From assembly GCA_050084985.1 (NCBI GenBank), contig JBITNC010000001.1, positions 119,288,001-119,352,000 of the forward strand: 64,000 nt of DNA, given 5' to 3'. A program made the translations under genes and the position numbers. Within the stretch, counting starts at the first letter, position 1; each line of letters starts with the position of its first letter. The notes beneath the pieces are model-generated. The model was given only the letters and a program-made list of their open reading frames with translations. It did not search any database and was not told where the DNA came from. Of this stretch, positions 9,641-49,580 are shown one piece after another. The stretch comes from Nageia nagi. Its lineage: Eukaryota; Plantae; Pinophyta.

Positions 9641-9959
9641 AATTTTGAGACTTATAGCAAGAGAAAAGAAATATATGGACTTTAAAGGGATAAGATCCTT
9701 AAGTTGTATAAAAGAAACTTAAAATCAATCCCATTTAAGTTCTATTTCAAACATAGGAAAATTATAGAGATTTTTAGTTGGAAAATAAAACTAGAACATA
9801 GTTTAAATTGTAGCTTTAAAGTGTTCATGTTGTAGAGATTGAGAAAATAGAGAAAGCCCATCTTTTGGTTTTGAATTATAGGAAGCTATGAAATTTGGGG
9901 TTTTTATCTTATTTTTTACAACTTGGACAATGAAAAAAGAGATTAATAGTTGTATTATA

Positions 9960-9962
<3 letters not shown>

Positions 9963-10040
<78 letters not shown>
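9963..10040. repeat. (TA)n microsatellite
   Basis: Perfect TA run. Others lie at about 761-786, 4448-4472, 16093-16124 and 18815-18873. Confidence 0.95.
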
Positions 10041-10043
<3 letters not shown>

Positions 10044-10686: not shown

Positions 10687-11140
10687 TGTTGACACCCAAA
10701 ACTGGACATCTTAACATGTTCCCATTTAGGTGCAACTTCACATACATTTTTAATCACATTTTATAATATTTTAGTCATATTTTACCATATTATCACATGT
10801 TTCTCAGGTTGTATTCTTATTTTTTATAATTAGGTACATCACTTAGGAATGGACACTCAACCTTCACACAAAGGGTCAAATAGTGATATCACATCTCATA
10901 TAAATGTAAGCATCTATAACCTTAGAAAAGCATGTTAAAATTACATCTTAATAGTTGGTACCCTACAGTTGGGTGTTACTAAATACTATCTATTGATATT
11001 GGAATCTTATTATCACTAGAGAAAATATCTATCATATTTTATATTTACAATCATATACTTGGTTTGACTTATTATCATATCTATTGTTATTGATCCTTGT
11101 TGGCTGACCTCATTCTATAAAAACCTTAGCATTTGCACTA
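10687..11140 (+). repeat. Putative 5' LTR of R1
   Basis: Starts tgttgacacc like the other LTRs here and is followed by a decayed PBS-like tttttggaac..cccatgctagg. No partner LTR in the window, so the end is approximate. Confidence 0.5.
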
Positions 11141-12198
11141 AATTTTTGGAACTTAGTGCCCATGCTAGGATTCTTTCTACTATTGGAGATGGGGTTCACA
11201 TAGCAAGGTTATCTCTATTCAATAAGTTTGCCTTACATATCTCCAAGCATGATACAGGTAAGGACATACAAGTATTTATCTTACATTTGATTTTATCTCT
11301 TTAGTGCATGCATTCATTTTAATTCTTGACATTAGTGTAATTCATAATTATGTTACTACACTACTATACTCTCGATTCCCATTTATTCATGTATATTTAT
11401 TTGAGTAAATTAGCTTAGATAATACATACTTAAATATTTATGTGTATTTAGTTCATTTAAAATAAAAATCTAAGCGTACTAAAATACATATCAACATAGT
11501 GGCACCCACCATTTATGAATTTTTTTTTCTCTTAATTAAGGTTAGAATAAAGATGCTTTTGAACCTACAACTCTACCACAATGTCAAATTTATTATGGGT
11601 TTTATTTACATATTATATTCTTAAGGTATTTTTTGTTACTAATAATAAAAATGCATAAATTTCTACTAACCCTATAGCTAAGAAAACTCCCAAAAAATGG
11701 AAACTTGGTAGACCAAAGGTGGTTCAATGATGAAGTTAGAGAATTCATATAAAACAACCATCTATAGATGTATAGGGATAAATAACCAAATATGCTAGTG
11801 AAAGTTCTTCAGATAAAGATACTTTTATAGAAAGCTCTGATAATTCAATAAAGATAGTAAATTAGAGGATTCATTCTTATAATATTGGATATTAGACCCA
11901 TAAATGAACAAATTCCTCCTATAATTGAAGAAGAGATCATTTCCTAATTAAGTGATGATGAAGTATTAAGCAAAGTCACAATTTCAAAGGAAAATAGACA
12001 TACATTCATCAAGTTTCTCAATGGGCTATCAGTTTAGGAAAAAGCTTATGCAATTGATACACTCAAAGATGAAGAAGTGGTAAAGCAATGAAAATTATGG
12101 TATTGTAACAAGGAAAAGAAGAATATACCTCCTAATGATATGACTTTCACACTAAGAAATATGAATTTAAGATTCTTCGTAAATAGCTCCATACCTAT

Positions 12199-12897
12199 TG
12201 TTAACACCTAAAAAGGAATTTTGATTTAATTAAAATACCTTTTTAGATATTTAAAATAGTTTATTTAATTTATTAAATAAATAGTTTTTCCCATATGCAC
12301 TTTCATCTACCTTTATATTTTATGGTAATAGGTCAACTCAACATCATAATAAGCCTAAGGAAGAGCCTTACCACTAGACCTATTACCTATAAAGTTGGAG
12401 CAATTATGTATGATCAAAGATATGATATGACATGATATAATTTTAAATCCTTAACATGTGGTAATATACTTATGTCAATCTTGACCAGTATTTCTAAATG
12501 GCATCTATTATCTCTAAATTTTGTTATACTTTGAGCTATGCATTCTTGTAATCTTTCTTCCCTTCACGATCAAGATTTGACATATCAAAAGTGGGATGAT
12601 GACATCAAGCTTAAAGGTGAGATATTCTAGAGAGGTTGTTAAACATTATTATTAGGTTGAGGATGGATTGGTGGCTCTGTATTTTGGAGAAGCTCATAAT
12701 TCATCCTCTTTTAATTAAATCTTGTATTTATTCATCATCATAGGTAAAGTGCAAGTTTTTATCTTCCATTAATCCAGTTGTGATAGTTCAAGTAGATCAT
12801 TGACATATTTTATGTCATCAATATCTTGTTATTTAGTTAATTGAAGAATTTAATTATTCTATAAATAACTATGATGATTATTATTTTAGTTATAACA
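12199..12897 (+). repeat. R2 5' LTR
   Basis: TG...CA (tgttaacacc...ttataaca), colinear with 50438-51156. Confidence 0.93.
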
Positions 12898-13049
12898 ATT
12901 AGTGAACCCAAATTTTTTTGATACATTGCTATTATCCTTCAATTGTTTCCCTAAAACCTTAGGGTTTTGATAGGACTATCTTTCATTTCAAGTATTTTAA
13001 AAATGGAACCTACTCATTTTCTTACCATGGTCAATAGATTTGACAAGAT

Positions 13050-15416: not shown

Positions 15417-16089
15417 TTTTGCCCCTTTTTAAATTATCAATTGTTAGAAGTAGTTGATAATTCAAAAACAAAGATGGTTGTGTGCAAGTTTTTGGGCTTG
15501 ACAATTCAACTCTAGGATTGGTATTTAAAATTGACTTATTCTCTTGAGTAAGTCAAGTTCGATTGATTGAATCATGGTTAAAAATATTTTCATCTTTTTC
15601 TCTTGATACATTTTGAAAACTATTGAAATATATACCAAAACATTGCTTAAATTGACCATACATAGTGTATGCTTGTTATGATAGTTGTATGTTGATACTC
15701 TTGTTCATCTCTACATGTCGAAGTGAGTTTGCATAGTTAAGCTTAGTTTTTTGTATATCAATTTGATTTTAATAGTACTACCTTTTATCCTAGCAATGAG
15801 GTTTCATGATAATCTTATGCAAAAGATTATTCCATTTTAAAATCATGTTCAATTTTTCAAAGTCTAAAATATTGAATAAGCTTAAGTCTTTTTCATTCAT
15901 GTGGCCTGGAGTAAATTTCTAAGATAAGGACTTGTTTAATGTCAATTTATTATGTTCCAATAATAGGAAGAATATTATATTTTCAACCTTATTTTCATTC
16001 ATGGAAGGAGGGTTATATTATCATTTTCCCTTTTTTTTTAGAAGTAAGGGTAAATGGATTTCTATTTTTTTGTAAAAGTTTTTATATTT

Positions 16090-16128
<39 letters not shown>

Positions 16129-16549
16129 TACTTCAAGCAATCACTAGTGTTTGGGAAGAATCATTGATGTCCATCCTCAATCACTAGCATTTCAAAGTGC
16201 AAGGGGGATAAAAAGGAAAAATTGACTATCATTTTCTTATTTGCTTTCTTAAGCTAGAGTACTTGTCATCTTGCTACTCATGTTCCTTTTGACTTTTGAC
16301 CACTATTTTAGCTACCATTTGCATGTAAGGGCCAACATTCATCCTTGATGATGACCAACTAGTTAGAGAAGACCAATCTGGGAGAAGGTAGGGTTTTCTA
16401 AACATTCATTTTTTATTTTTTTTCTTGTAAGTAATATTTTATCTATCAATTCTTAAAATAAAAATTGTAGGAGTCCTTATTTTTTGTATTTAGAGCATTT
16501 TCAACTATTTATTTTTTTATTTTTAACTTATATTTTTAGCTTTTTGAAA

Positions 16550-18660
16550 ATGTTAGAAACTCATATCCATAATCATTGGCTAGGATTGAGGTAGTAGAAT
16601 CATTAGTATTCAAGGTTGGATGTTGGTGACCTTGCAATCAGGTTTCTTGATCATCAACATTTGACTTTAGGTCATCAACGTTTTTTTTACTTATGCAATT
16701 TTTATTTTTAGGTTCATGATGTATTCAAGCCATAAGGACAATATCCTTTGATTCTGTAAGAGGGATGTTAGTTTCTTACTATCATAGACCATGCATTTTT
16801 CTAGATAGTTGGTTTTGGAGTGGGACCCTTCATGGATTGAATTCATTAGGAGTAACCTTTGTTGGATGCTCTTCTTGAGAGGTGGGATTCTATCACTTCC
16901 ACCTTTCATCTCTCAATAAGGGAGATTATGATCATAATGGAGGATATGCATCATCTATATCACTTTCATTTTCATGGATGTAGGATTCAACATATAGTGG
17001 ATAGGGATGGTGCATTGCTAGATATCTCTCATTTGTATGGAGTAGATAAGGTGGATGTTATCACTTCAAAGATTAGTTTAAGGGCCATCTATTACAAGTA
17101 GTACTAGATGGAGGATTAGTAAGGTAGTATTATATTTTCATATTTGATGGGGTTGATTCAGTGCTACACTCTTCAAGAAACTAGAAGTGGTAGATTTTCA
17201 TGATCCTTGTTATCCATTATTGTAGATATGGTCCATCATGGGATAGTTTATACATGGGCACCTACTTTACTAGCTCATATTTATAGAGATTTATTCTTCT
17301 ATTCTTAGGTTCATCAAGCTTCATTATTAGTGATGATCACTTTATAGTCATGGTATTATGAGTATATTTCAATTATTCACCCCATAGGATTACATGTTCC
17401 TAATTTTTCCATCCTTGTTGAGTATCTAGCTAGCATCTAAGGTGGAGGGATGAATTTTAATTACATTAAACAAATGGAGTCCATAGGGATGTAAGATTTT
17501 ATAGAGATATGTTATCCCATATAGTGTCTGATCATGTCTGATTCAAGTCATACTATCTATAGCTAGCATGGGATGAGCTCAAGTCTGAGTTGACATGTAT
17601 TCATTAGGTGAGGGTCTTGAGTGATAGGAGGATTGAGTTCCTAAAGTACTTTCATTTTGAGTGTGTGAGGCACTAGTTTTTATTGGTTTAGGATATGCAC
17701 CCCAATCCAATGAGATATCAATGAGAGGGCACCCTTCTAGTTATGAAATATAGAACTTGGTGTATGCAAAACCAAACCCTACTCAAGAGGAGGATATTAA
17801 AGAATAGTCTACTAAGGATTATTTTGGATTGAATGAGGCTTTTGCTTCCTGGTAGAGTTAGAGGAGATGAGTGAGGAGGCTCAAGAGTGTTGGGTACATC
17901 AATAGGTAGATTTTGAGGAGGGTATGGTAGAGGAGATTGGAGTAGATCCTATAATGGATATCCTTTAGGAGGTTGAGCTAGAGATTGTAGTTGATGTTCT
18001 TAAGAGATCCATATAGGGTGAGGAGGATGCTACTTAGGGTGAGGAGGGAGACATAGGAGGAGATGAGGTACCTCCACCCTAGGTGCCCAATATTGATTCC
18101 TTTTTAGGTGATATATATGAGTTGCAATATCAACTAGCTCAAGATAACTCACATCATTATTGATATAAGGCTAAGTAGGATTGCTACAAGCTAGAGAAGG
18201 ATGAGTCTTGTGCCACCATCCAAAGGTTTTAGGAGTAGTAGATAGGTATAGTGAGCTCTTTTATGGGGGTAGATAATTACTCCTTATATTTTATGTGAGG
18301 CATTTGTATTCAGAGGGATTTTTATATGAATATAGTGCATACTTAACTGAGTGATGTTTTAGCATTCAATTTAGGTGGTTAATATCCTCTCCCTCTTAGT
18401 GGATATGTTCCCATTGATATTAGTACACATGCAGTGGCTACAACTAATGGAGCTCAAGGGACTATCAACATGTAGGGTAGACCATTCAGACCAACTTTTT
18501 CCCATAGTAAGAGTGTAACTACAAGCGTATCATCTCATCATCCTATAGGTTCTTCTAAATTATGTAGGGCTAAATGAGAGGTTAGTCCTAGTGGATCAAT
18601 TAGCACTACTCATCTAGGTTGAGGTACTAGAGAGAGAAGAGGTCAAGATGAGGGTGGTTC
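16550..18660 (+). pseudogene. Aminotransferase-like plant mobile domain (PMD) gene, antisense within R3
   Basis: LLDALLERWDSITSTFHLSIREIMIIMEDM (16859 ORF), YTWAPTLLAHIYRDL at about 17250, WYYEYI at about 17350, then an acidic / coiled-coil tail. Confidence 0.85.
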
Positions 18661-18807
18661 ATGAGGATGCCCTAGAGTTTGTCATATTTTCCATGATGAT
18701 GTTATTTTATAGACTACATGGATTTGACTTTACTTATTTTTGGGATCATGGAGGGCATGATCTAGCTTCATGGATGGACATGATTAGTTTTTGATAAATT
18801 GACATAT

Positions 18808-18879
<72 letters not shown>

Positions 18880-20999
18880 TTGATGATGATGATATTAATG
18901 TTACTTTTATAATAATTCTAATGATTATTGATGATGATATTTTGTGCATATTTATAGTTTTGTACTCATGATGTATGCCTATTGATGACATGTTTTCCAA
19001 TATGTATGAGTTAGGGATTTGGTATTTTTATTATTAATGAAATGATATGCATTGTTGATGATTAGTTGTTCAAGTTATTTAGATGGATTATTTATAGCTT
19101 GAAGTTAATTGATGCATATGGAGTATTTTTTTTTTTGGAACAATATTTTATTTATAGTAGTATGAAATAAGATTGCATAATTTTTCATTCTTGGCTATTT
19201 CTACAGATGGTTGATGTACACATATGACAAGTTATAGATAAAAAAATATAATGAAACAATGAATGAAATATTTATGGAAATAGGAATATATGAATGTGTA
19301 AAATTAATAAACATGTGGTAAAATATGAACATTGGATTTCAATCTAATAGGATAAGTAGATGATAATATATAAATATTTGATCATGAAAATGGATAAGTA
19401 AGTGAATGATATAACCATACAAATGTCAAACATAACATGTCAATAACTCGCCAAGATTATAATAATAATGTATACATCATGAAGTGGGATATATAGATAA
19501 TATAACAAAGAAGTGTAATAAATAAGATATTCAATCATTTATTTCATCTATTAAGGATGATATAAAATAAGGTTATAATACACATAGGTATATTGTGAAC
19601 TCTTGTGTGGGAAATGATTTTCATATCCTTCTCTTGGCACTCACTAACTTAATGTTTCATGAGCATAATATATGTAAATTAATTCATCTATATGAAATGT
19701 ACATTGATGCACTATTAGGAATGGACATGTCACCACCTAGTAAGGTATACCCCACTACCAAAAAGGCATCCATAGCCTTGATAAAAGGATATTGTAATCA
19801 CCCAAGAATTCTACTTGTCTCTTCTTTGTTTTTAAATTTTGCTCTTTCTTTCTTTTTCTAAATCCTATCTCTTTGGTTCAAGATGAAGCAAAATAATAGG
19901 ATGAATAATTACTCAACATTATGTTCAAGCAACATCTAGCTTTTAATTATTTTGATATTTTAAGTGTAAAAATATGCATGAGTTCATAATATCTTGATGA
20001 TGTATCATAGTTATATTCATTTATCACCTGAAGTTTTAGAAACTTCACATTAGATGCTTTGACCAAATCAAATATGAATATTATATTCATAAAACACTTC
20101 CTTATTTCTAAGTACAACTCTTTATGTGGATAGTATATGGATAGATGGATGATATATATAGCTTGATGAGTCATAACATTACCATGTTTGATGCTCAATA
20201 GTTTTATCACTCATAGATGATGAGTAATACAAAGTAAATATAATACAATGACATAGATACAATGGAAAGCTCACCCAATAGCTAAGATGCTTTAAAAATA
20301 TAATTTTCAAGTATATACATACATATAGAGTTTTTTTTGTATTTTTTAATTTTTTTTTGAGTTTTTTTCTTTTAATCTTCATTTGACTCATCAAAGAGAA
20401 ACCTATGTTGTATGTAGATTTGCAAAAATTGATGATGGTAAATGGTGTGAAAATGATAAAATGTATAAAGGGTATGATTGATATGCTAATAGGTATGGTC
20501 ACATGTTATTATGGAGAAAAGTATAGTATCCTAATGGAATATATTTTGTGACATAATGTGAGTTATGGTAAGTGGATCAAATGACACTTTATGGTGTATA
20601 GATGGTGGAATGAGAAATAAAATGAACTTGCATATGAAGGTATTCACATTTCCATTAAGTGTTATTCTCCAAATTAACCTTAGAAAATACAATAAGTTCA
20701 TTAATATTTTGAGGAATTATTCATCATGTATGCCATAAACAAAATAGGTTCCCTAACATGGTTCATGGTTTATCACAATACCCACATCCATAGAGTTTTC
20801 TAGGTCATAAAAGGCTTGATTATATTTTTCAAGAACATTTGAGATATTACCATGGATAGGATTTTGTGTTGGATGCTTTTGAGTAAATCATGAAATAGGT
20901 CAAGACCCACATTTTTTTGATAGACCTTTATGTCAATGGGTAAATGTGCAATGAAAATGTAAAGTGATAGGTTACAGTAACTCTTAGCTGGTGGGTAGA

Positions 21000-33599: not shown

Positions 33600-36500
33600 A
33601 TACTAAAATGAAATGAACAACTATTAGCATAAATGGGTTTGATAATATTGAAAATGAATTTATTGGATATGTATTTATGCTTATGAAGTAGATGGTAAAC
33701 TAGTTGATCAAAAAGTATATATTTTTCAAGTAAAATTATCATATAATTTATTTCTTGGTAGACCATGGATCCATAATATTAGGGTTTTTACTTCCACATT
33801 ACATTGATCTAATAAATTTATGCATAAAGGCAACCATGTTACTATTCATGTAGAAGATAATCCTATAGATATGTGTTCAAGTAGTTGAAAGATTTTGGAT
33901 TCCTCATAATTTAGTTGAAAGTGAGAAAGATACACCAACACCTATCATAACTATCACCTCACAAGAGGTAAGCATGGGTGCATATAGAATCCCCAAGATA
34001 GACATATGGAAGAATTTTAGAGACTTGGACAACCCCTTCCATTTTCACCTAAAGGAGACTAAAGTTGACCATGGATTCTTTATTACTGAGCAAAATAATG
34101 ATCCCATTGAAGATGCTAGCATAATCTACCAAGGGCATGATGAAAAAAGTGCATCCAATAGTGAAGATACAACTCGTTCTATAAGTGCATCCAATAGTGA
34201 AGATACAACTCTCGATTCTACTTTTTCTAATGAATATATGTATAAATATTAGTATAGTGGAAAAGGATTAGGAAAGAATGAGCAAGGAATAATAGAGCCC
34301 ATTCCAAATGGAGGTCACCATAAGAGAACAACTAGTGTTAGATTTGATGATTCTACACTTAGTTCATCTTCAATGGTTCCATTAGTTCAACATGTGGATA
34401 ATAGTGATTAGGGCTACACCAAATATATATATGATGAGTGGCTATATTATGGAATGATACATGATCCAACATAGGAATTATAGGCTTATTATATACATCC
34501 ATTCATACCTCCTACAACTTTGGTACAAGTGGATATTTTCAAAAATGATGATGCCATCCTTAAGAAGTTGGGGACATAGAGTGAGTTTCCCAAATCTAAT
34601 GAAAAGAGGTTCATAGCATGGTTCTTGAGACATCAAGCATATTTTTGTAAAGAGGTTTGTATGGATGATGTAGACATTGCACATTAGAACCTCACCCTTC
34701 CTTTTATTTCTATTTATTTCCTACTCATTCTTATTTGTTTTCATTCATATTTTATTCATTTTTTATCAAATAAATCTTATGTCTAGGTAATCTTTCTTTC
34801 ATATTTAATCTTTCCATCCCTTAATTGGATGCAAATGCTAAATTTATAGCACTACCACTATATTATTCCCCTCTCTTATGGTTGAGTTTAGACGAAGGAT
34901 TTGGGGCATTACCTATGCCTCCCCAACTCAATGATGAAATATCCTATATTAGTGAAGAAACAATAGAAGTCAATATTGGTACCCAAGTGGATCCATAGTT
35001 GATCAAAATATGATCTTGGTTAACCTTGGAAGAATAGGAAAGGTACCACCTATGGTTAAAAGATTTTTCTAATATATTTTCTTAGTCTTATTCTAATATG
35101 CCTGGTATTGATCTTGATTGCATCACTCATAGCCTAGTTATCAATGAAGATGTCAAACTTGTTCAACAAAGTCCTAGAAAAATGCATCCTAAGATATCCC
35201 TTGATTTTAAAAAGAAATTTGAGAAATATCTTACTACTTGTTTCATTGTCCCCATTGATTATCTTCATGGATATCTCACATTGTTTTGACAACTAAGCCT
35301 AATGGTGAAATAAGATATTGTATAGATTTTAGAGATATCAACAAGACATACCCAAAAGATGCTTTCCCTCTGCCTAACATTTATATGATTATAGATTCAA
35401 TATTAGGCCATGAGGTTTTATATTTCATGGATGGATTTTTTGTATACAACCATATTAGGATCAATAATAAAAACTAACATAAGATAACTTTTATTACTCC
35501 TTGGAGAACATTTTATTGGGTGGTCATGCATTTTGGTCTAAAGAATGTAGGTAAAACGTATCAGAGAGCCATGGTATGTTTCATGATATGATCCATGAAA
35601 GTGTTGAGGTTTATGTTGATTACATATTATCAAAATACATAACCAAATATGATAATATTTTATATTTTAATAAATTTTTCCAAAGAATGAGAGAGTACAA
35701 GTTTAAATTAAAACCTCAAAAGTGTGCACTTATAGTTTCATAAGGTAAATTTCTAAGGTTCATTGTTTCAAGAAGAGGTATAGAGGTGGACCCCAAGAAA
35801 TTTTTAGCTATTATTGATTAGAATTCTCCTAATAATTTTAAGGTATTAAGAAGTATTCAAGAAAAATTTTAAGCAATCAAAAGATTCATTTCTTAGCTAG
35901 TAGATATGGCTTCCCTATTTTCTTATTTGCTAAAGAAAGGTGAGAAGTTTATCTAGGTTGAAAAGTGTCAAAAAGCTTTAAATAACATTAAAAGGTATCT
36001 TACTAATTCTCTAGTATTATGCCCCTATAATTTATAAAATATTTTTTTAATTTATGTTTTAGCAACATTAAGAGCAATGCTAGCTCACAAGGATGATAAC
36101 AATAAGGAAAGAGTAATCTATTATGTTAACAAGACTTTACTTGACTATGAGATAAGGTATAATTTAATTGAAAATATGTGTTTTACTATACTCTTATCAA
36201 ATGAAAAATTAAGACATTACATGCTTATAAATATAACATATATCATAGCTTAAGAAGATCCTCTTAGATATCTCATGTCTAAGCCCTACCTATCTACAAA
36301 GGTTGCAAAGTGGGTAATGTTGCTTCAAGAATTTAATTTGTATTTATCACTTAGAATTAAAAAAAGGGATAGGATATAGTATATTTCATTGCTAATCACC
36401 CATGAAATAAAGTATCCAACATGCAATAATAGTTTCCAAATGAAGTGGGCAACCATAACACCCTTGAATAGTGCACTATCACTCTATTCTTGAGCCTTAG

Positions 36501-36885
36501 TATCCATAAGTTTTTATTAGTTTCATGGAAAATTATGAATGGACCATGTTCTTGGATGGTTTGAGATGCATTCAAAAAGTAGGGGTAGGAATTGTTCTTA
36601 TCAACCCTCATGGTGATGTTATCCCTATATCTTATCATTTAAGTTTTGATTCCACTAACAATATAGTAGAATATGAAGCCCTAATTCTAGGTTTAAAGGT
36701 TGTAATACTTCTAAAAGTAAAAAGGATCAAAATTATTGGTGATTCTCAATTCATTTTGAAGTAAGTGTCTAGAATATACAACACCAAATATCTCAAGTTA
36801 CAACCATACAAGGAAATGGTAGAGAATATCCATGTATACTTCAATGAGTATAAAATTGATAAGATTCTAAGATACAACAACATGT
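33600..36885 (+). pseudogene. R2 pol, first part: protease end, G-patch, RT, RNase H, aRH (cut by S2)
   Basis: YNLFLGRPWIH at about 33745, GKGLGKNEQGIIEP at about 34260, RYCIDFRDINKTYPKDAFPLP, VYVDY at about 35610, aRH WTMFLDG..NNIVEYEALILGL..GDSQ. Confidence 0.92.
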
Positions 36886-36910
36886 GGGTAAGTGCAAGAA
36901 GATGGATCCA
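36886..36910 (+). repeat. S2 left TIR
   Basis: Inverted match to 48134-48158. Confidence 0.92.
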
Positions 36911-38109
36911 AAAAATGGCAAAAAAGTGGATTCATTTTCCATAATTTTTAGGTTTCATCATAATTGATCTCAAATTTTTAATCCCTTAGAGATAGAATCT
37001 TGAAAAATATCACTAGCTAAAAATAAAGCTCTTAGAGTGTAGTTTCCAAATATGTAATTTATTACAATACCTAGTTGATAGAAATTGATTTATGATAGGT
37101 ACTTCTAAAAGCTATTATTTAAAATGTGCCATTTTATTAGCATACCATGGTCTTCTATGACAAGCATATTTTGACCTAAAACATAATCTTTTTAAAATCA
37201 TTTTGGAAAAAGATACCTAACACATTGAATATTATGCAAGATATTTTTTCATATTTTTCATGAATATTTTTTTAATTAATTTTGTACTAGTTGTAATTAT
37301 TATTTCAAAAAGTACCAATCTACAGCACACATAATTTGACCTAAACTTATCCTTTTTTAGTTTTTGTTTTTTAATTTAATAGAGAATTATTTGTAGATTG
37401 TTGACATATAATTTTTATTTCTTAATTCTTCCAAAATAAAAAAGTTTTTAAAATAAGTCATAAAACCTAATTTTTCAAGTTTAAAGACTAGTTTCATTGA
37501 AAATTACTTTATAAATAGGAAACATAATCAAATTATTAAAAAACTTATATATTTGTAATTTGTACTACTTGGCCTATAATGGGTTTTAATTTCATGAAAA
37601 AACACCTCAAATCACTAGATCTAACATTTGTCAAAAGTCTTTATTTTTCCTTGTCACTACCATGAACAAGAAGGTGCAAGTCCAAGGCTAGTACTTGGTC
37701 CACCAAGCCTTTTCAAATAACAAAATTTTATTCCATAACAAAATTACATTATATTTTTTTATTCAAAATAATGAAATTTTGTTACAAATGAAATTATGTT
37801 ATAAATAAAATTGTGTTATAGATACAATTTCATTATATTTGTACTTGTTATTATCAATAGTACTTTGTACAATACTCTATCTAAAATTTGCATCATTCCT
37901 CCCATACCCTACATCACCAATATCTTTGAAAGTGATATTTTTACATTTTTCTAATGCAAAATTATTGAGGATAAGTTCTTTAGAATCCATTTTTGAATCT
38001 CTTATCATAGGTGGTAACTTTGCAACATTTTTGAAGGTGAAATATGAATATTTGATGGTGAAAGAAAGTGTTTTCAATCTTTTATTTTGAAGAAATTATT
38101 GACTAATCA

Positions 38110-40120
38110 CATGGGTTCAAAACATCATCAAACAAAGAGAGCAAGGATGAATTTGAGACCTAAAGAAATTCAAGTAAATAAAGAAAAGGAGGCAAAAAGA
38201 TAAAGTGATAGATATGCAAAGATTAAAACATCTACCTTAATTGCAATTGTTTAGGAGAATAATGAGGAGAATGTAATTGAAGATATGAATATGGATGATG
38301 CAAGTGTGGAACATGCAAATATTATATATGCTTTAAATCCTAGAAGTAACTCTTCAAATACAACATTGAATGAAGCTCTAATTCCAACCACATATTCAAA
38401 TCCACTAGTGAATGAAGCTTTAATTTTGATAACTATGAATATGAATCTAGGTATACCTTCAAAACCTCCTTTGAATGACATGTGAAATGTGGATATTCAA
38501 TTTAATTTATATATGCCTTTTAACCCTTCTTTTGATAATGTAGATGATATTTATTCTAATCATGAGGAAAATGAAATAGTAAATGATATTAAAAATCATA
38601 GTTTTAATAATTATTTGGACACTATTTTTTTTTTAATTGAAATCAATGGATTAGATAATGTCCCTGGTAATAAATCTTGGAGATACATATGAAGATATGC
38701 AAATATGGTATATGATCAATTTTTCTTTAAGAAAATATTAGTTTTTCAATGTCAATTCCTATTGTAATTAATTATATGGTGAAAATGAGAAAGGTAGTCA
38801 AAACTTTAGGCATTTGTGTGAAGAAGGATGAACCCCTTAAACAAGTTATATCCACTATTACTAGTGCCACTGACTCTACAGGAAAGAAGAGTCAATCTAA
38901 AGATAAGAATGGGGAACATTGAGCTATAATAGTAACTTTAGTTTATCCATTTCTACATAAGTGATAACTAATTACATTCACTAAAGTTTATCCAATATTT
39001 GTTCAAGGTATTTTATGATAATTTGAAATAAAGGGAAATTCAAATGGCACAACATTTAATTTGGCTAGATAATTGTATGGGATAGTTTAAAAATGCATAA
39101 GTATTTTATTGGCCAAGTAGGGCTCACAAAGAGAATAATATCCAACATATGTGGAGTTTTTTTGAAGTTGTACATGGTAAAGGAGAACATGATGGAGCTA
39201 GTGCATGCATTAAAAGAGCTCTTACTAGATAGCAACTAAAATTTGAAGAGGCAACCAAATTTAGAGATACATATACAATTTTGGATTGGTGTAATATAAA
39301 ACTATCTAAAGGATCAAGTTCAAATTCTACAATTCAATGATTTTTTTGGTTAGTTGAGGAAGATAATATTCTAAGTCATCATGATTGTGAGACAATCAAT
39401 GGATCAGCAAAGTGGCATTTATTTAGGAGTTCAAAAGTAAGCACATGGACTTTATGGACAAGAAATTTGCATGTTTTTGTTATTTTTATATTGTAATGAT
39501 TGGGAATCATGTACAAATAAAGAATGGGTTGAGGAATGGAAACAAAGATATTTGACACCTATATAATCAAATGATCAATATGAAAAGAGAATTGAAGATG
39601 AGAATCAAGTTTTTGCATCAAATGACTATGATCATGTTTTAGATATTGTACAAGAAGGTAATTTAATTTGTTATATTTATATGAATGCATAATTATGTAT
39701 ATATGTTATACTTTATTGATACAAATTTTAACTTCAAGATATGTGTATGCTATTGTGGCACCTAAGGGAAATGTAGAGGTAATAGAGTATTGGTTAGCTC
39801 AATGTGTTCAAACAAAACATAAGTTAACTCATACTTGAGTTGATGATGATGGTTTTGAGTATCTGATAGGTTCTATGGTGGCTATTGGCACATGGCTATG
39901 ATCATATATCATATGACAAAATGGTTTTCCTACATATGAAGATTATCAAATAGGTAAGAAGATTATACACTACTCACACTTATACTAGAAAAATAAAATA
40001 AAACTTGATAGATTTTGTGGGAGACCTCATAATAAATTGTTGTGAAAAACTTTGATGGAGGAACATGAAAAAATTATGGATGCATTGCAAAAAAGAGAGG
40101 ATGAAATGGTACAATAAAAT
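38110..40120 (+). pseudogene. Sola2-like transposase, spliced, internally deleted and decayed
   Basis: One frame reads HLIWLDNCMG*FKNA...HMWSFFEVVHGKGEHDGASACIKRAL (D at 39068 and 39191), then ACFC..DWESCTNKEWV. GT-AG intron at about 39658-39739. The first catalytic motif was not found. Confidence 0.75.
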
Positions 40121-40159
40121 AAAAAATATAGGTACTTATTTATAACTTAATATTCTTAT

Positions 40160-40222
40160 CCCTAACCCCTAATCCCTAAACCCTAATCTCTAACCCCTAA
40201 TACCTAATCCCTAATCCCTAAT
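40160..40222 (+). repeat. Degenerate plant telomere-type heptamer array (CCCTAAA variants, 9 units)
   Basis: ccctaac ccctaat ccctaaa ccctaat ctctaac ccctaat acctaat ccctaat ccctaat, followed by a C-rich pyrimidine tract to 40311. Confidence 0.85.
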
Positions 40223-40312
40223 ATCCAACCCCTTTCCTCCTTCTCTTCTCCCTCCTCTTCTTCCCCTCCCCTTATTCCCTTCTCCCCTTATCCTCCCATC
40301 CCCTCACCCTCA

Positions 40313-40385
40313 ACTATATTAGCTCAGCTAGAAGAGCATGTGGATTTTAACCATGTGGTAGTGGGTTTGATTCCCATATATAGCA
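40313..40385 (+). pseudogene. tRNA-Lys(UUU) pseudogene
   Basis: 73 nt actatattagctcagctagaagagcatgtggattttaaccatgtggtagtgggtttgattcccatatatagca, colinear with plant tRNA-Lys(UUU) as recalled. A box tagctcag, anticodon stem gtgg/ccat, T arm ggtttgattccc. Differences are mostly C>T and G>A. Confidence 0.8.
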
Positions 40386-41409
40386 TGTACCTTCAGAATT
40401 AAATGACCTTATGTACATATAAACTTCTATCCTTAGGTAAGTTGATAAGGAAAAATAACGACTCAAATTGAACCAATCATTCTAAGATGAATGCACTTTG
40501 AATTTGATTAACAATAAACTTTTTCAACATTGTTAATGTTGTCTTCTTTTTTCATTATTTTGTCCTTAATTCTATCCTTATTCTCTTCCTTATTAGTTCT
40601 TAATTTTTTTTTGTCTTCTATTATCGTTATTAGTTCAAATTTGAGAATACAAAATTGGTGAATCAATCTAAGGATTATATAATAATCATCATTGAAGTAA
40701 CTACAGAAATATCATATTTCCAAATTACTTAAATATATCTACATTTTCCTCTCCTATTTTTGTTTCCTATAAGATTTCATTTGATTTGTGGTATTAATTA
40801 TTCTCAATATATATTCATTTGTCATTTAGTCATCTTATACTCTAGAATAGGATCTTCATCATCTAGATTTATGAATATTTTCTTCCTATAATCCTCTTAA
40901 TATTAGGGAGAAATGTATCATGTAACATTAGGGAGGAATATATCATCCTCTTAACTATTTGGGTTCCTTCCTTTTTCTCTAACTCAATTTCTAAGATTCA
41001 TAGTTCTTAGTTAAATAATTTGTGTTACTATTTTTTTAATATCTAAATCTAAAATTTATGTTATGAGGTTTTTAGTAGGAGGCCTTGAAGAGGAAGTATT
41101 TTGTTAAATAATTTTTGTTGGGAGGTTTAAAATTCTTGTTCAAGGAAACCTTCTTTTTAATTCATTAAGGGGGTCATTCAATTTTTTGGACAAAATCAAC
41201 CTCTTGGAAGGAAAGTAGGAATTTTACCCCTTAGGGTTCTATTTCTAGGTGTGAACATTTATAAATATTACTAGTAGGAATTTCTAGATTTGTAAGGGTT
41301 ATCTCCTACTTTCAACTCTTATAGGTGTCACTATCTTGAGGTCCTTTTGGTCAACCTATTTGCAGAGTTAGTTTATACCTTGAACTTTCAATTTAATGAG
41401 TGTAAATTT

Positions 41410-41570
41410 TCAACTTACCATACAACATATAGTACCTTCAAGATATAAAATATTGGAATATTTGATAAACTTATTAATATATTATTAATGTATTCCAAAA
41501 CCTAACTTAGTAAGAAATCTAATGTGTAAAGGTAATCCAAGATACTTGATTATTGATTCATATAATTATC
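41410..41570 (-). pseudogene. L1-type LINE ORF2 fragment
   Basis: IKYLGLPLH..FWNTLI..LSNIPIFY, the post-RT motif set of plant L1 elements. Confidence 0.5.
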
Positions 41571-42299
41571 TGCAAGAGCCTTATATTAAAATTTGAATTC
41601 CCCCCCTAGTGATAATTTCTAAGGAATCAAAACATCATACCAACATAACTTATTTTAGCTTATGAGCTAACTTATTTACTTTACAAATTATTTACAAGTT
41701 ATTTTATATTTTACAAGTTATTTACAAGTAAATGTTGTATTAACTTGGTATTTTTATTATGAGCTAAGTCTCCAAGATTAACTTAGTATTTTTACAAAGT
41801 ACCCTATCATAATTACTAATTTACCTATAATAATTTAACTTGATGTACATTAGATAATTTAATGCAACATAACTTGACATAAAAACATAATTACTAAATT
41901 GCCCTATCATAATTTAATTCAACATAAAAACATCAAAATAACATGCAATTCATTAACATGCCTCCATAAACATCTATGATAAAATCATGCATATATATGT
42001 CAAAAAGTAATATATAGTCCATATGACCCATAATAATGTACATAATAACATCCATAGTCTATATAAGAATGTACATCTAGTCTCAGACAACACATGTACA
42101 TGTACATACATACATATATCAAAAAATACAAAGTCCATCAAATTCAAGTAAGTTCTCAAAGATTTATATAACAAAAGGCCTAATATAATGTGCATGTAAC
42201 AACAAAAGACTTAAATCCTCAAAAATGTATATAACAAAAGACCCAAGTCCTCAAAAATGTATGTAACAACATGTACCTAAGTCCTTAAACACATACATA

Positions 42300-42541
42300 T
42301 CTACTCATAGATCTAAGTCCATAAGATCTATCTAATACATACACCTTCCCTATCATAATCAATCTTCCTTTTAGTTCCATGTGATGAAGGTGAAATTGTA
42401 GACTCATGATGTTAGATAATATAAAGAAAAATAAAATCATCTTTTTAAAAATTTGATTCAATTTCTTAATAAATTATATTGAAGTCACTAACCTACATAC
42501 ATGCATACATACATACATACAACATACATATACATACATAC

Positions 42542-42606
<65 letters not shown>

Positions 42607-44283
42607 CATAAATTTTACCACATCATGATGCTCCTCTACTCATTTAGAAACTACATACTGAATGTTGTTGTGCAACCTATAGTTTATTTGATGCATCAAT
42701 ACAAAATATATCATCAGGTAGACCCTAAAATATCAAATAAAACACCAAATAAAATGCATATGTGTACACACTAGTTATTTTAACAATATTACCTCAAATC
42801 TATTAGGTGGGTTAGAGTGAAATTATGTCTCCCTAGTAACTGGTGATTAGGATCCATTGTAATGATGCTATCAACTTGCAAACATATATACAATTTACAT
42901 GCTAGATCTAGTGAAAAAAAGAGTACATAATAATGACTAGTATTTAATTGAGAAAAAACATATAGTGGTTGGTAGATCCTGAATAGTAGTCAACACAATC
43001 TCTAGATGGTCAGATGTGAACATACCATGATCTCCCCATAATAATTAAAATATTATATGATAATGCAAGAACATGTATACAAAAGTGAAATGCTTGACAT
43101 TACAATTTAAACAAGGTGTAAATTTGATTACCTAGAAGGGTGTCTAATCTTGTCTAGAAGTTAATATAATATGACCTCAATCATATCCATATAATGATGT
43201 AGAACCCATCCTCTACACCAAAAAAATACAAATATAAGATTTATATATTAATTTTATGAAATTATCCTTATTAAATATAAAATGTGTGCCTTAAAAATAC
43301 ACATGAAATTTACCTGTGTACTAGAAGTATCATAACCGCCTAATAACATCTGCATAAAACTATGAAGATTAGTATTTACTATACCTACACCTAGAGTGGG
43401 CCTAATACATATCTAGTGGTAATGATATAAGGTGTGAGGCATCATCACCTATGAGTTACTATATCCCTCTACATCAAATGCTTCTTAATGTCTCTCATTG
43501 AACTTAGCTACCACATTGGTAGCTTGTTTAGTGAGAGTACCTGATAGCTGACTCAATCCCTCTAACCCTAAAACCACTATAGAACTAAGAAAATAGTAGG
43601 AATAGTAGATCAAGTAGAAGGTACAAGAGGTGGAACACATCCCAAGTCAATTAGGATCAACCCATGCCCCTAGTCTATCCTATGGATAACCAAGACCAAC
43701 ACCCTGAGATGGTCTAATATCAAAGTAGTTTGGTTTTTTATGTAACACAAACTCTACATGCAATTTCTTCAAAAAATACAATGGGATATCTCTCCCATTA
43801 TCATATGGGGCCTAATCAAATACCATCCACCATCTATCCCAAAAATAATGGGCTATCTTAGAAGGGGTACGCCACCTAATACTAATTCTTTATTTACTAA
43901 GTAGGATTGGTTGATTGGTTTTAGAATTAATGAATTACTTAGATACTATTTGTTTAGTAATTTTTAGGTCATTTATCTCCTTATGGGAGAGACCATTTTC
44001 ATAAAAATATCTAGCCTCCTATCATGATGTACATCATAGATATAAAACATGACTTATGGGGGGAAATATCTCTAACAATAGTATGGAGTGCAGTAATTAT
44101 ATCTTGTAATACCTTGATATTTTGAGTAATAGCTTCTCAAAGGCGATCCCCATTTGACTGAGGGGGTGGTGGGTTTTCATGAGGTGGACTAAAGGATGAA
44201 TTTAGGGGGTTCTCATCATATGGAATATAGGGTGGAGAATGGGGGTTTTCATGATGTGGAGATGGTGGACATGGGGGATCCAT
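42300..44283 (-). pseudogene. S2 ORF2: multi-exon gene of unknown family
   Basis: ATG at 44283 MDPPCPPSPHHENPHSPP..., then IPLYFLKKLHVEFVLHKKPNYFDIRPSQGVGLG. Several small downstream exons with GT/AG edges. Homologous to S1 ORF2. Confidence 0.6.
42495..42602. repeat. (TACA)n-(TA)n compound microsatellite
   Basis: Directly visible. Confidence 0.9.
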
Positions 44284-44539
44284 GGTAACAAAAGCTACAA
44301 CCTAAGTGAATATACATAATCTAATCTATGAAAGCATAAATATTTCAAAAGGATATGAATATCACATGATATTCAATACATGATAATCTATAAATACAAA
44401 TTTTAAAAATAAATTATGTAAATACAAATAATATTCAATATGATAATCTATAATGCATTTGAATATATGAAAATAATCCCTAATTCATTACAATATGTAA
44501 AATAATTAATGTTCAAATGGCATCCCAATTTATCTTAGT

Positions 44540-46800
44540 GTTATGCTTTGCTTGGTGATATCATTGTAATCAATAATTAGCTTTCAAAGCTTGGGAAGAG
44601 TGTCTCCATCCCTTGAAATTATTAAGGGTTAACAACTCAAGAGAGTTCCAGAATTTGATGGTTGGTAAAGGTTGTAAATAAGGTTTGCTTAGTGATTTGT
44701 AAAGAGCATGTATGCACATATAGGTTAATGATTCTACTGGGAGAGAGATCAATCCTATGAGGGAAAATATAACAATACATATGTAATCATAAATGGTCCA
44801 TTCCTCCAACAATTCATGAGCCTAATGAAGGTGTTCCACCTTCATTGCTACCTTTTCCACCTAGATTAAGATCTAGTTACATATTAAATAAAATTGTATA
44901 TTTGTCAATAAAATTAAAAGGAGAAGGGGAAAAATAATGAAAAAAGAATATCATAACTAGCTTTCCAAATACAAAAATGAATGTTCAATCTAAATAAATA
45001 TCATGTACTCTTGGTAAAGGAATGGTGAAGGAAGGTTGGTCCCCTAAGAAATCTTATTGCCATGACAAGGGATTAAGCATGAAAGTACATTATAAATAAA
45101 GTACCAAGCTTATTTGGCATTTGTACATGCCCTAAAAATATGCAAGACATCATTAAGTGGTTGGTATAAGGGGTATTGAGTTCATCCACTTCTAGGTTTA
45201 TGAGATGAGTACTAAGAGGTAATCCATAATAAATAGAATTCTAAGAAAAGATTAATGATTGGGTTCAATATAAGATATCCATACCACTTAAAAGCTAACC
45301 CTCCTTCTAGACTTGAAATAAAATAAGTTCCATTTCTTATCAAGAGCTTCGATACCATGGGGAGATAAGGAAGTAACCTTGCATATACTTATCAAGCTTT
45401 ATAATTAAAGAGTACAGGGTGTCCATAAACTAACTCAAGTCTATCTAGGAGGGCTTTTATATTAGACTCCATTTTCATGGAGCATATGTGTTCAATTGCA
45501 ATAAATAATAATATCACAAGCATCCATCCTTAGTTTATAATTAATGGCTCTACTGAAATTCAACCTATGGAATCTAGTGTCTATTTAGTAAGAGAACAAG
45601 TATAAAATGGATTTGATACCCTTTCTATACAAATTCTATGCATGTAAGTTAAACCTTTTCTCGCAAGATTCCCTAATAAATAAGAACATAGGATCACCAT
45701 ATGTAGTGGATGGTATACTACCTATGGATTTGACCCATGGTCTCCCATAGTTCTCCCTAATAATGAATTATAGGGAAAGAAATATTTTCACTATGTAGTA
45801 AGTCTAGTATTGAGAGTTTTAAGTGCTAATTGAATTGGTAAGAATTTATGATCATTGTAAAAATGGACACATTTAAGTTCTAAAGTATTTTTTCTTTCTT
45901 AAATGTTGTATCATCCAACATGTCCATATGAGATTGTAAAATTTAAATAAGCTTATATAAGAGGATTATATCTTGAGTTTCTTTGATTGCTTAGTAATAT
46001 TCTATGTTCTTGGGTACCTTTAGGGAGTTATAATCTTTCTAGCACTTGATAAGATTTTGATATGCTATTATACCTTTTTGTTTTGGCATGTACACATACA
46101 TATTTATTCAAAATGATTTATCAAGATAACTAGATGTACTTGGATTGAATTAAAAGGAAAAAGGGTACATGTTTTCAATAGAGGAGGCAAGGAAAGTTGA
46201 TCCTACAAGGCCTTCTTCCCCATTATCATTTATGCAACTTGAACCTATAAAATATGTCACCTTAGTATAAAGCTAAGTAACATCATCCTCAAAAGGTTGA
46301 ATTCTATCAAGAGCAACCTTGAACTTAGTAAATCTAGTAATTACATTACTAAATTATTAAAATATACCATAAAAATACAAAGTAAAAATAACTATCAAGA
46401 AATGTGAAAGTTTAGTTTCATGTTCTTACCTCAAGAAAGAGCCAAAGCAATAACAACATGAATAATAATGTCTCTATCTAGACTAGGGGCATTTATAGAT
46501 GAATGAGATGCATCCTTGGCTATGTTGAGGGTAGGAAGCTCTATATACATATACTCATAATCTAAAGTATATTATTTTAAATATAGATACTCAAGCTCAC
46601 CATCTGAGGACATAGGAACCCTAAGAGGAGTAGGTCGAATGGTATCCTAGTAAGAAACATAATCATCTAAGATAATGATGACATTACTTGATCTTTCCTC
46701 ATAGGTCATGGATAATGAGACTCTAGTTTCTCTTAGGAAACAAACCAAGGAGGCATATAACAATCCCTATCAATCACAACACTCTTAATAAAATTTTGAA
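44540..46800 (-). pseudogene. S2 ORF3: decayed multi-exon ORF of unknown family
   Basis: Long frame 46070-45500 (KGIIAYQNLIKC*KDYNSLKVPK...GELWETMGQIHR*YTIHYIW*SY) whose stops are compatible with CAR/TGG/CGA deamination. Last exon overlaps ORF 44570-44812. Splice-like edges at about 46428 and 44862. Confidence 0.45.
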
Positions 46801-47269
46801 TTTAATAAATAACAAATTTAAAAATTTCTCAAGAAACAGCAAACTATCTAAGAACATGCTCGATATGATAGGATTATAAGGAATCAAAGTTAGTGTATTA
46901 TTTTCCTTTGTAACTAGGTATAGTGGAGAAGGATTATAAATACCTCATAACCATGAATGAATATTATCATATTACACCTACAATGGATCTTCTTGGTCAT
47001 GTTGTACATCTAAATGAAGCAAACAAATTTATAAATAGCATTTAAATAAAATCTAGTGTTGTAGTGTAGAATTATTTGCTTTATGCTTATATAATTTATA
47101 AATTTTAACCCCTCATTCATTCTAGATTCTATTTAAGAGCTCTAAAAAGGGTTTGCCTTATAAATGAAATGAAATAGAAGTGTTTTCCAACCTGATTAAT
47201 TGTCTATAAATATCCTTTTAGTTTTTGTAAACTCAACATCTCTAAAAGAGGTTGTTGATAAATAATGTA

Positions 47270-47520
47270 TTTTAGGGTACATATTTTTCTTGTATGAGCC
47301 TACTGTATTATGTTTATGTTGTTCTAAAAGTGTATGTAAATATTTTTCTTGTACGATATTCATGACCAATATTCTAGATTAAAGTTGAAAAAAGGGTACA
47401 TGTTTTTCTTATACGAGCTAGTGTTTGGTTGAAGTTGACAAAAGGGTAAATATTTTTATTGTATATGTGATGATTAGTGTCAAGGTTTGTTCAGTTGAAA
47501 AATGGTACTTATTTTTTATT
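47270..47520. repeat. S2 subterminal direct repeats of about 55 bp
   Basis: (ttgaaaa)aagggtacatattttt(t)cttgta five times with variation. Confidence 0.7.
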
Positions 47521-48133
47521 TATTTAAAGTCTCTTTGATTAAAGTTAAGTAAACTAAATTAAATTTTTAATGTTTAATTATTCATTTTTTTAATTAAACT
47601 AAACTAATTTTGCAAAAGAAAAGCATGAAATACAAAAGTACACTAAATTTGCAAATAAAAAACTAAATTAAACTACACACCTCAAAAACTAAGAAACCCA
47701 AAAACTAAATTTTTAAGTGTTTTTACAAATAAAAAATAAGAGAAGTAAGAAATAGGGTACTCAAAGAGCTAAAGAAGGTCATGTAGTGGATGCAGGGCAT
47801 AAGAGCATGGGGTGGGCCTCCTCAAACCAAAATGGCATTTGTTACATAAGATAATGAGGGCCCACAGGCTATTTTCATAGGGGTTATAATTATATGAAAT
47901 GAAATCTCCATTCTTAAGAACCAAAATTTCATTTCTTAAAAAAAATGGTTATTAAGAATAAAAATTTTATTTTTGGGTCAGGATGTTGAACCAAAATGAA
48001 ATTTTGATTTTTAAAGATTGCAATTTCATTTCATTTTGGTTTGTGAGGTAGAAGGAAATGAAATTTCAATCATTAAAAATCAAAATTTGTTTTAGTCTAC
48101 CATTTGTTTTTAAGTGAAGATGTCCACCTTAAG

Positions 48134-48158
48134 TGGACCCATCTTTATGCACTTACCC
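48134..48158 (-). repeat. S2 right TIR
   Basis: tggacccatctttatgcacttaccc. Confidence 0.92.
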
Positions 48159-48162
48159 ATAT

Positions 48163-49580
48163 ATGTTGATGCTGTGGTTAGTGTTTCTTACCTTGATCCT
48201 ATTCCCATAGAATATGAAGAGACCATTCTCACAATCAAAAATATTGGTAAGCATTCCCATGATTTTGTTATTGAGGATTCCTTTGAGCACCATTATTTTT
48301 CTACTAGTTGTATTAATGCATGTGAATGGTACCAAGATGTTTTCAATTATCTTAAAGATGGTGTTATCCCTATTACCTTTAATCATAATGATAGGATTAG
48401 ATGTAAAAAAACTAACAACTAAGTATATCATCTTGGCTGATTTATTGTATAAAAGGTCTTTTGATGGTGCTCTTCTTAGATGCTTAACAAGACATAATGT
48501 AGATATGGCCCTTCATCAAGATCATGATGGTGAAAGTGGTGAACACTTTAGTGCTAAATTTATTGATCAAAAATTGCTTAGACTAGGTTATTATTGGCCT
48601 ACTATGCTTGAAAATTGTGAATTACATATAAAAAAGTGTGAACAATGTCAAAAGAATGCTAGTCTTCAACCTTCTTCTTATCACACTTTGCATTATATTG
48701 TATATCCTTGGCCTTTTTTTTATTTGGGAACTTGATTATATTGGTAAAATTAACTTTGTTTCAAGAGAAAGACACAAGTTTATCATTACAACTACATATT
48801 ATTTCACAAAATGGGTAGAGGCTATACCCATGAAATCTACAAAAGTAGGTAAGATTATTGAGTTTATGATCTGTAGATATGTTGTTACTTCTAAATTATT
48901 TATGGATAATGGTACTAGATTTAAAGGTAATGAAGTTAAAGAATTTTGTGCTAAATATCATTTTGAACAAAATTTCTCTACCCTATATTACCCCCAAGGT
49001 AATGGTCAAGTTGAAGCTTCTAACAAGGTCATCAAGAGTATTTTATCCAAAATTATTACTAAACATAGTAAGGATTGCTATGAAAAAATCCTTTATTATT
49101 TGTAAGCCTATAGAATAAGAATAAGAAATTTAGTAGGGGAAACCCATTTTTACCTAATTTATGGTGATGAATCCATAGTTCTCCTTGAGCTAGAGATCAC
49201 ATCTCTTCATGTGTCACTAGATGGTCTCATTCCTAATAAAGATAAAAGGAAAGCTAGAATAGAAAAAATAGAGGTCCTAGTTGAAAAATGATTTAATGCT
49301 CTAAAACACCTTCATATCTACCATTATAGAATCCAAATATCATATAGCAAAAATATCAGACCTAAACAATTCAAAGTTGGTGACCTAGTCTTAAAAGAAA
49401 ACCTTGCCAACATTAAAGCACTAGAAAATGAAAAGAATGGTAAGTTCAAAACTAATTGGATAGGTCCTTACATTATCATTACAAATTATGGAAAAGGTAT
49501 GTATAAATTGTGAACAACTTATGGTAAATAAGAACATAATACAATCAATATTATGCATCTAAATAATTTTTATATGTGAT
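48163..49580 (+). pseudogene. R2 aRH end and integrase
   Basis: LYKRSFDGALLRCL..HDGESGEHF..LGYYWPTM..CEQC, YFTKWVEA, STLYYPQGNGQVEASNK, WIGPY at about 49460. Confidence 0.93.

Follow-up and report, generated by a model that had tools for sequence, protein, structure and literature searches.

Sola2 transposons, typified in Repbase by Sola2-1_HM of Hydra (class E.12; PMC3985635), are the closest described relatives of the element analyzed here, which occupies positions 36886-48158 of a 64,000-nucleotide stretch (the window) of the conifer Nageia nagi (assembly GCA_050084985.1, contig JBITNC010000001.1, positions 119,288,001 to 119,352,000). Both have the DFAENY..., ...ISDDxxHD..FV, [ST]DGCxxQ[FY]KN, and WNFFxxxHGKG blocks, a catalytic triad of aspartates (Asp; DDD), 4-bp AT-rich target-site duplications, G-R-G termini, and no Pfam domain. 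Compared with that group, the present element comes from a plant (streptophyte) lineage, reaches a far greater length (about 12.4 kb in its undeleted form), and is represented by a dead copy, and it adds a convergent open reading frame (ORF2), a tRNA-Lys/telomere-like module, and, at the C-terminus of the transposase, a GDxFAV...FYLxxC domain. Large Sola2 elements with a second gene have also been described in dictyostelids, as the Sola2-Fanzor chimeras DFa-1/2/3 and PPa-1/4/5, which resemble our element in size (10-15 kb), in their short imperfect terminal inverted repeats (TIRs), and in their 4-bp AWWT duplications (PMC3627910). However, their passenger is a Fanzor/TnpB-like protein, when ORF2 bears no such likeness and no known domain. 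From an architectural perspective, a further parallel is maize MuDR (mudrA, mudrB), where a transposase and a convergent accessory gene likewise lie between inverted ends and where many internally deleted non-autonomous derivatives exist, although MuDR belongs to an unrelated superfamily (Mutator-like elements, MULE) with 9-bp duplications and long TIRs.

In seed plants, Sola2 is already known at the catalogue level. In the portions of these sources available to us, DNA/Sola-2 repeats amount to 56.7 Mb, or 0.6% of contigs, in Cryptomeria japonica (PMC11539532), and Sola2 is the most abundant class II superfamily in Cupressus sempervirens (bioRxiv 10.64898/2026.07.23.736688). These repeats come from the same plant lineage as the window element, but the same portions give class totals from automatic annotation, without ends, duplications, gene content, or passenger tRNA. 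An earlier note on this DNA had supposed that such a family would be poorly described: this does not apply to the superfamily itself, which is catalogued in both conifers, but it does apply to the anatomy of the element, as the accessible part of the conifer literature yielded no description of it and that of the wider literature none of the ends, the duplication, the tRNA-Lys/telomere-like module, or the ORF2 of a plant Sola2. Overall, our observations make it very probable that 36886-48158 belongs, as an old and non-autonomous copy, to a Sola2-type family of DDD cut-and-paste DNA transposons that is abundant in this genome, and that this copy has suffered an internal deletion.

Ends, target site, and host retrotransposon

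The element, 11.3 kb long, is bounded by 25-nt inverted ends that match at 22 of 25 positions and read GGG...CCC, the sole such pair within the 64-kb window. Its outer features and its insertion site are as follows:

36510-36885, plus strand: host Ty3/gypsy pol, RNase H part, broken at 36885 (Pfam RVT_3 8e-8, RNase_H 2e-4; the frame resumes at 48163)
36882-36885, no strand: left copy of the target-site duplication (ATGT)
36886-36910, plus strand: left TIR, GGGTAAGTGCAAGAAGATGGATCCA (start of the similarity to a metagenome contig and of a read contig)
36911-38047, plus strand: 5' subterminal non-coding region (82% identity to L009 7498-9610; many diverged read contigs, from four runs, in all bins)
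47894-48094, no strand: 3' subterminal short direct and inverted repeats, in units of about 39-42 nt (repeat search)
48134-48158, minus strand: right TIR, reverse complement GGGTAAGTGCATAAAGATGGGTCCA (pairs with the left TIR)
48159-48162, no strand: right copy of the target-site duplication (ATAT) (flank comparison, frame restoration)

The left flank, ATGT, and the right flank, ATAT, share three of their four bases, and the interrupted sequence is a Ty3/gypsy pol gene in which Pfam places RVT_3/RNase H at 36510-36764, upstream of the element, and Integrase_H2C2 and rve at 48214-49102, downstream of it. On removal of the element together with one of the 4-bp flank copies, the RNase H frame reads through (...KILRYNNMY joined to VDAVVSVSYLD...), and when all eight flank bases are kept, the host frame is shifted. 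Restoring this frame requires the removal of 1, 4, or 7 extra bases, among which only 4 gives matching flanks (3/4). The left end is moreover marked independently by a metagenome contig, L009, whose similarity begins exactly at 36886/7, the sequences upstream being unrelated, and by a read contig of a public run (X2 record 9), whose match begins at 36887. Taken together, the ends, the flanks, the frame restoration, and these two left-end marks establish that the element, its inverted ends, and its 4-bp duplication are real. The 25-bp GGG repeats, the atgt/atat duplication, and the exact restoration of the retrotransposon RNase H frame, which had all been proposed in the earlier note, are thus recovered as proposed, the host sequence joining without a shift once the element and 4 bp are dropped. 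The window yielded no paralogue of the host gypsy element in which this site is empty.

As a side observation, (TACA)n/(TA)n microsatellites that are alike lie inside the element (42494-42603) and elsewhere in the window (9953-10055, 18802-18902, and 16081-16139).

Transposase remnant and internal deletion

The transposase gene of this copy was delineated with stop-free window pieces in database searches, rather than with a joined spliced or read-through model, and with a local family hidden Markov model (HMM) built from 31 long homologues, against which the window frames were scanned with X at stops. The following parts were obtained:

38048-38689, plus strand: stop-poor frame, possible N-terminal transposase exon, with a basic stretch followed by an acidic/Ser-rich one (MNMDDASVEH...) (homologous open reading frame at L009 8902-9264)
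38943-38947, no strand: junction of a 1,087-bp internal deletion (L009/L015 segments without window counterpart; AGTA microhomology)
38948-39677, plus strand: transposase core remnant in one exon, with HFYISDN, WLDNC, HGKGEHDG, then a Cys-rich block (tblastn, family HMM, 67% identity to P0004)
39678-39739, plus strand: sole supported intron, limits approximate (break in the protein alignment between ...DIVQEGN and YVYAIV...; same gap in L015, 3541 to 3636)
39740-40110, plus strand: C-terminal transposase exon (GDxFAV...FYLxxC domain), with stops (HMM 377-481, 37 bits; match to Taxus P0209; conserved with the second window copy at 1-520)

The core aligns with Cryptomeria XP_057867281 (P0167, 505 aa), which matches 38948-39493 with 49% identity over 182 aa (tblastn 1e-53), and this alignment goes on in another frame to 39677 and resumes, beyond a gap of some 60 nt, at 39725. 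The family HMM is likewise colinear on the window, with model positions 138-322 (165 bits), 322-387 (26.5 bits), and 377-481 (37 bits), and positions 1-137, which include the first catalytic Asp, are absent from the whole window. Upstream of the core, the stop-poor frame at 38048-38689 had no database or Pfam match and is at most putatively coding.

Two catalytic motifs are retained, WLDNC at 39062-39076 and HGKGEHDG at 39173-39196, and their Asp codons, the second (39068-39070) and third (39191-39193) of the triad, stand 41 codons apart. The earlier note had described a spliced transposase in which WxDNCxGxFKN and HGKGEHDG motifs at this spacing are followed by an ACFC motif. The motifs and their distance hold, but both lie inside one exon, and the first is interrupted by stop codons (WLDNCMG*FKNA*VFYW). 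As for the ACFC block, 1-nt deletions at 39466 and 39495 place it in another frame than supposed, and the introns reduce to a single supported one at about 39678-39739. Besides these two deletions, the core exon contains six in-frame stops (38969, 39029, 39083, 39098, 39230, and 39338), several of which, compared with the codons of L009, come from CpG codons (e.g., CGA to TAA and CGG to TAG).

Sister copies of the element, found on the metagenome contigs L009 (82-88% identity) and L015 (about 73%), account for the missing first block. Similarity of L009 to the left part of the element amounts to 82% over 2.1 kb (L009 7498-9610), and between points that are adjacent in the window, both sisters carry about 1,080 extra bp (L009 9611-10697, 1,087 bp; L015 1744-2820). 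The lost stretch encodes transposase residues ~5-230, with the first Asp block (VVDFAKNYTL in L009) among them, in the same exon as the core. A candidate for a decayed first-Asp block at 38700-38760 (YMINFS / ENISFSM) was rejected: it is unseen by the family HMM, and the true block lies within the 1,087 bp, as seen in both sisters. Given the stops, the frameshifting deletions, and the lost first-Asp block, the transposase copy is dead; the element is an internally deleted pseudogene that could only ever have moved helped by another copy.

On this basis, the history of the copy may be sketched as follows. The family transposase would have bound the GGGTAAGTGC... inverted ends, excised the element from where it lay before, and moved it to an AT-rich, ATAT-like target of 4 bp in the Ty3/gypsy RNase H region, with duplication of these 4 bp. 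The 1,087-bp loss, which has AGTA microhomology at its junction and took away the N-terminal third and the first catalytic Asp, would be a typical product of abortive gap repair, and later decay, of C-to-T type, would have given rise to the six stops and the two frameshifts. This transposition chemistry and this order of events are what we infer, and any role of ORF2 or of the tRNA-Lys-like sequence would be equally conjectural.

The insertion also appears to be old, as pointed to by mismatches at 3 of 25 positions between the TIRs and at 1 of 4 between the flank copies, together with a G+C content of 24-34% across the whole window. With regard to abundance, Logan contigs placed on 36400-40400 from four public runs of three studies numbered 1,700 to 13,000 per run, with 85-99% likeness, in all bins, and with differences that are mostly transitions; since thousands of diverged contigs per run are involved, the family is a high-copy, old repeat in those organisms. 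None of the RNA runs contained the stretch 36400-40400.

Passenger module and ORF2

Beyond the transposase, the family carries a telomere-like/CT-rich array, a tRNA-Lys gene, and one convergent gene, ORF2. The relevant features, including those of a second copy of the same family at the start of the window, are:

40158-40312, plus strand: CCCTAA[AT] telomere-like array (40158-40222) and C/T-rich tract (Tandem Repeats Finder, TRF, period 7, 9.3 copies; conserved with L015)
40313-40385, plus strand: tRNA-Lys(UUU)-like gene, decayed (Rfam RF00005, 49.5 bits, E 1.4e-7)
43257-44283, minus strand: ORF2 remnant, starting with MDP... at 44283, with the block ...HYFWDRWWMVFD*APYDNGRDIPLYF...KPNYFDI...GVG... 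(several stops, one frame change)
44284-47893, no strand: interior where a second extra gene would lie (no assigned feature)
1-4450, plus strand: second, more diverged copy of the same family, about 70% nucleotide identity, cut by the window start, with ORF2 on the minus strand (about 4400 to 3480) and, at 1-520, the C-terminal transposase exon (same convergent layout)

Directly after the transposase, the telomere-like array, the C/T-rich tract, and the tRNA-Lys(UUU)-like sequence follow one another in this order. At the same place, L015 (4060-4840) carries the same module repeated in tandem two to three times, including an intact tRNA-Lys (4238-4310) that is accepted by ARAGORN; this program made no tRNA call at window positions 40313-40385. 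In L022, another related metagenome copy, a C/T-rich satellite and a tRNA-like tail again come after the transposase (2270-2594). The module is absent from the second window copy, in which no recognisable right end or TIRs were found.

ORF2 extends to at least 43257, in unbroken pieces of 58-74 aa, and is colinear at the protein level with the second window copy (4400 to 3480), the best block reaching 54% over 70 aa. It is also 78% identical to an ENA fragment, P0270 (E 4e-18). Searches with ORF2 gave no Pfam match and no usable ESM Atlas match, and no homologue of ORF2 or of the 3' interior was found in 80 related metagenome loci, most of which are only distantly related or break off too soon. 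As an observation in its own right, both ORF2 copies share in-frame stops at two alignment columns (43647-43700 and 3825-3860, minus strand: ..GYP*DRLGAWVDPN* and ..SSQ*TLGAQLDPR*), the first of which corresponds to Lys in P0270. Either both copies stem from a master copy that had already died, or hypermutable codons were hit in parallel.

The earlier note had counted two extra genes on the opposite strand, one of which is upheld as ORF2 by the second window copy and P0270. A further gene, intron-rich and on the minus strand between 44.3 and 47.9 kb, would make this a three-gene family, and room for it exists, as about 3.6 kb between the start of ORF2 and the 3' subterminal repeats are left unexplained and contain a few short stop-poor minus-strand stretches. 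However, ten minus-strand pieces had no Pfam hit, and the interval 44284-47893 as a whole yielded no Pfam domain, no similarity, at the protein level either, to the second copy or to the 80 related loci, and no long stop-poor frame. The second extra gene of the earlier note is therefore unsupported, and we consider a three-gene family quite unlikely.

Superfamily assignment and reach of the family

The placement of the family transposase in Sola2 holds on the flank, the ends, and the conserved blocks, as compared in sequence. The core of Sola2-1_HM reads GDFAENYTFVVQDEIQSYHW ... CFISDDITHDVTYV ... FTDGCAGQYKN ... WNFFATSHG (PMC3985635 suppl. 5), and dictyostelid Sola2 elements (Sola2_DFa-2/PPa-1) have the blocks MDFKENIALG, FWSDGAKHFKS, and YHGKSDVD (PMC3627910 suppl. 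3). In the alignment of the plant family, the corresponding blocks are VIDFAENY..QNEIQS, HFYISDDxxH..FVQ, W[SL]D[GN]CxxQFKN, and WNFFExGHGKGEHDG, with D181, D270, and D311 invariant or nearly so, and they match both cores one by one, in agreement with Sola2. The window itself retains blocks 2 and 3 (WLDNC..FKN and HGKGEHDG), when block 1 is found only in the sister copies and the family alignment. The Sola2 reading of the earlier note is thus borne out by the AT-rich flank of 4 bp, by ends in GGG and CCC, and by the blocks that surround the second and third Asp, which do not match Sola1 or Sola3.

The ends and duplications of known elements can be compared in the same way. Sola3 makes 6-bp target duplications, when the duplication here is of 4 bp, and the core blocks of Sola3 differ from those of the family. 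According to the earlier note, Sola2 elements have GRG ends; the GGG...CCC ends of the element conform to the corresponding 5'-GRG...CYC-3' pattern. Its ATGT/ATAT flank agrees, in this one copy, with the 4-bp AT-rich (AWWT) duplications of Sola2. In dictyostelid Sola2 elements, TIRs are short and imperfect, duplications are 4-bp AWWT (PMC3627910), and ends are GAG...CTC, as far as a noisy text allows them to be read (PMC3627910 suppl. 11). For comparison, Sola1-1_AP has the blocks FDLEK, SDNCGGQNRN, and GHTQS, and Sola3-1_HM has KDYCQK, SDNASSYHGN, and EPCRGKD (PMC3985635 suppl. 5); read against Sola1-1_AP, the core blocks of Sola1 are absent, window and family carrying HGKGEHDG and QFKN instead.

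More remote comparisons were made with profiles and structures. A hhalign comparison of the plant profile with an insect homologue carrying SDG..QY.N / HGKG..DG blocks gave a probability of 96% (E 2.8e-9). Sola cores have been reported to lack any Pfam match (PMC5751038), and nothing relevant was returned by Pfam for 36 pieces of the two window copies (one database fragment included) and 13 family proteins, the domains of hAT, MULE, PIF/Harbinger, CACTA, Tc1/mariner, piggyBac, P, Merlin, Transib, and Ginger giving no match at E<=1 or E<=0.1; superfamilies covered by Pfam are thereby excluded at the sequence level. An AlphaFold model of the Cryptomeria protein P0167 has a mean pLDDT (predicted local distance difference test score) of 63, with core blocks mostly at 80-92, and its residues 147-360, which hold the three Asp, align with the catalytic domains of retroviral integrases, Mos1, Metnase, and IstA (VIA-align Z 8.7-7). 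Foldseek matches were weak and mostly to RNase H-like proteins. In this model, the P0167 core thus shows an RNase H-like fold without a closer solved relative.

Some of these observations weigh against our interpretation. The 4-bp duplication is known from one copy and is imperfect (3/4); a second complete element with both ends was not recovered from the 80 related metagenome loci, where a search for the TIR sequence and for G-R-G ends with 4-bp duplications gave chance-level pairs only, plus the single left end of L009; and the likeness to Sola2-1_HM, DFa-2, and PPa-1 was read off published alignments rather than scored against a Repbase/Dfam reference. One might hence propose that the element belongs to another superfamily, be it a separate plant-specific DDD lineage or Sola1/Sola3, with motif likeness due to convergence or deep shared ancestry, especially as kinship with Sola2 comes without an E-value against a curated sequence and as the structure search yields generic RNase H-like matches (Z about 8). 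However, the blocks agree with Sola2-1_HM and dictyostelid Sola2 and disagree with Sola1-1_AP and Sola3-1_HM, the duplication and the G-R-G ends are Sola2-like, the 13 family proteins have no Pfam hAT, MULE, PIF, CACTA, Tc1, piggyBac, P, Merlin, Transib, or rve domain, and conifer genome papers, in their accessible parts, class abundant repeats as Sola-2, which makes another superfamily very unlikely. That the element is instead an intact or near-intact autonomous multi-gene Sola2, its transposase restored by splicing and its two opposite-strand genes working, is scarcely credible. The motifs of the earlier note are present, one intron is real, and ORF2 shows conservation from one window copy to the other, but alignment to L009, L015, and P0004 refutes this reading for the studied copy: six stops and two 1-nt deletions fall in an exon that runs unbroken in P0004, P0167, L009, and L015, the first catalytic Asp block is deleted, ORF2 has several stops, and no third gene was detected.

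Reading the element as a decayed non-autonomous Sola2 copy, we can ask how far its family reaches. The piece 39101-39229 matched three short ENA fragments with 73-81% identity, whose profile retrieved 230 proteins (E<=1e-3) among 1.84e9 representatives, and a second profile (A3) retrieved 534. Named members come from Klebsormidium nitens, K. subtile, Ceratodon purpureus, Adiantum nelumboides, Taxus chinensis, and Cryptomeria japonica, the nearest of them to the window transposase being Cryptomeria XP_057867281 (49% identity). Judging from these homologies, the transposase family appears to extend from charophyte algae via mosses and ferns to conifers. Two further homologues may be mentioned besides. 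In Adiantum nelumboides P0098 (MCO5547757.1), an N-terminal transposase piece with the HGKGEHDG block is fused to an AP2/ERF domain (Pfam AP2, 5.7e-14); either an artefact of the gene model or the exonisation of a piece of transposon could explain this. On long metagenome contigs, inverted repeats of about 0.8 kb surround a distant transposase homologue (L076:8350-9142 / 17158-17964, and likewise L078 and L079), which may represent a long-TIR relative or an unrelated inverted duplication.

In itself, the studied copy adds little, being one dead copy of a family counted as Sola-2 in conifer genome papers. We deem it unlikely that the passenger module (the tRNA-Lys, the telomere-like/C/T arrays, and ORF2) is under selection as a functioning component of the transposon, as opposed to captured junk; if it were, the RNA polymerase III (Pol III) unit or the telobox array might shield the element from silencing or drive its expression, ORF2 might be a lineage-specific transposition cofactor, and every transposition would spread tRNA-Lys genes genome-wide. 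Three results are of modest use: the evidence for the reach of the transposase family, from charophyte algae to conifers; a clear-cut case in which decay at CpG sites and what may be a gap-repair deletion have killed such an element; and an anatomy of a plant Sola2 family, with its ends, its 4-bp duplication, a core exon almost free of introns, the C-terminal domain, the tRNA-Lys/telomere-like module, one accessory gene, and a deletion derivative.

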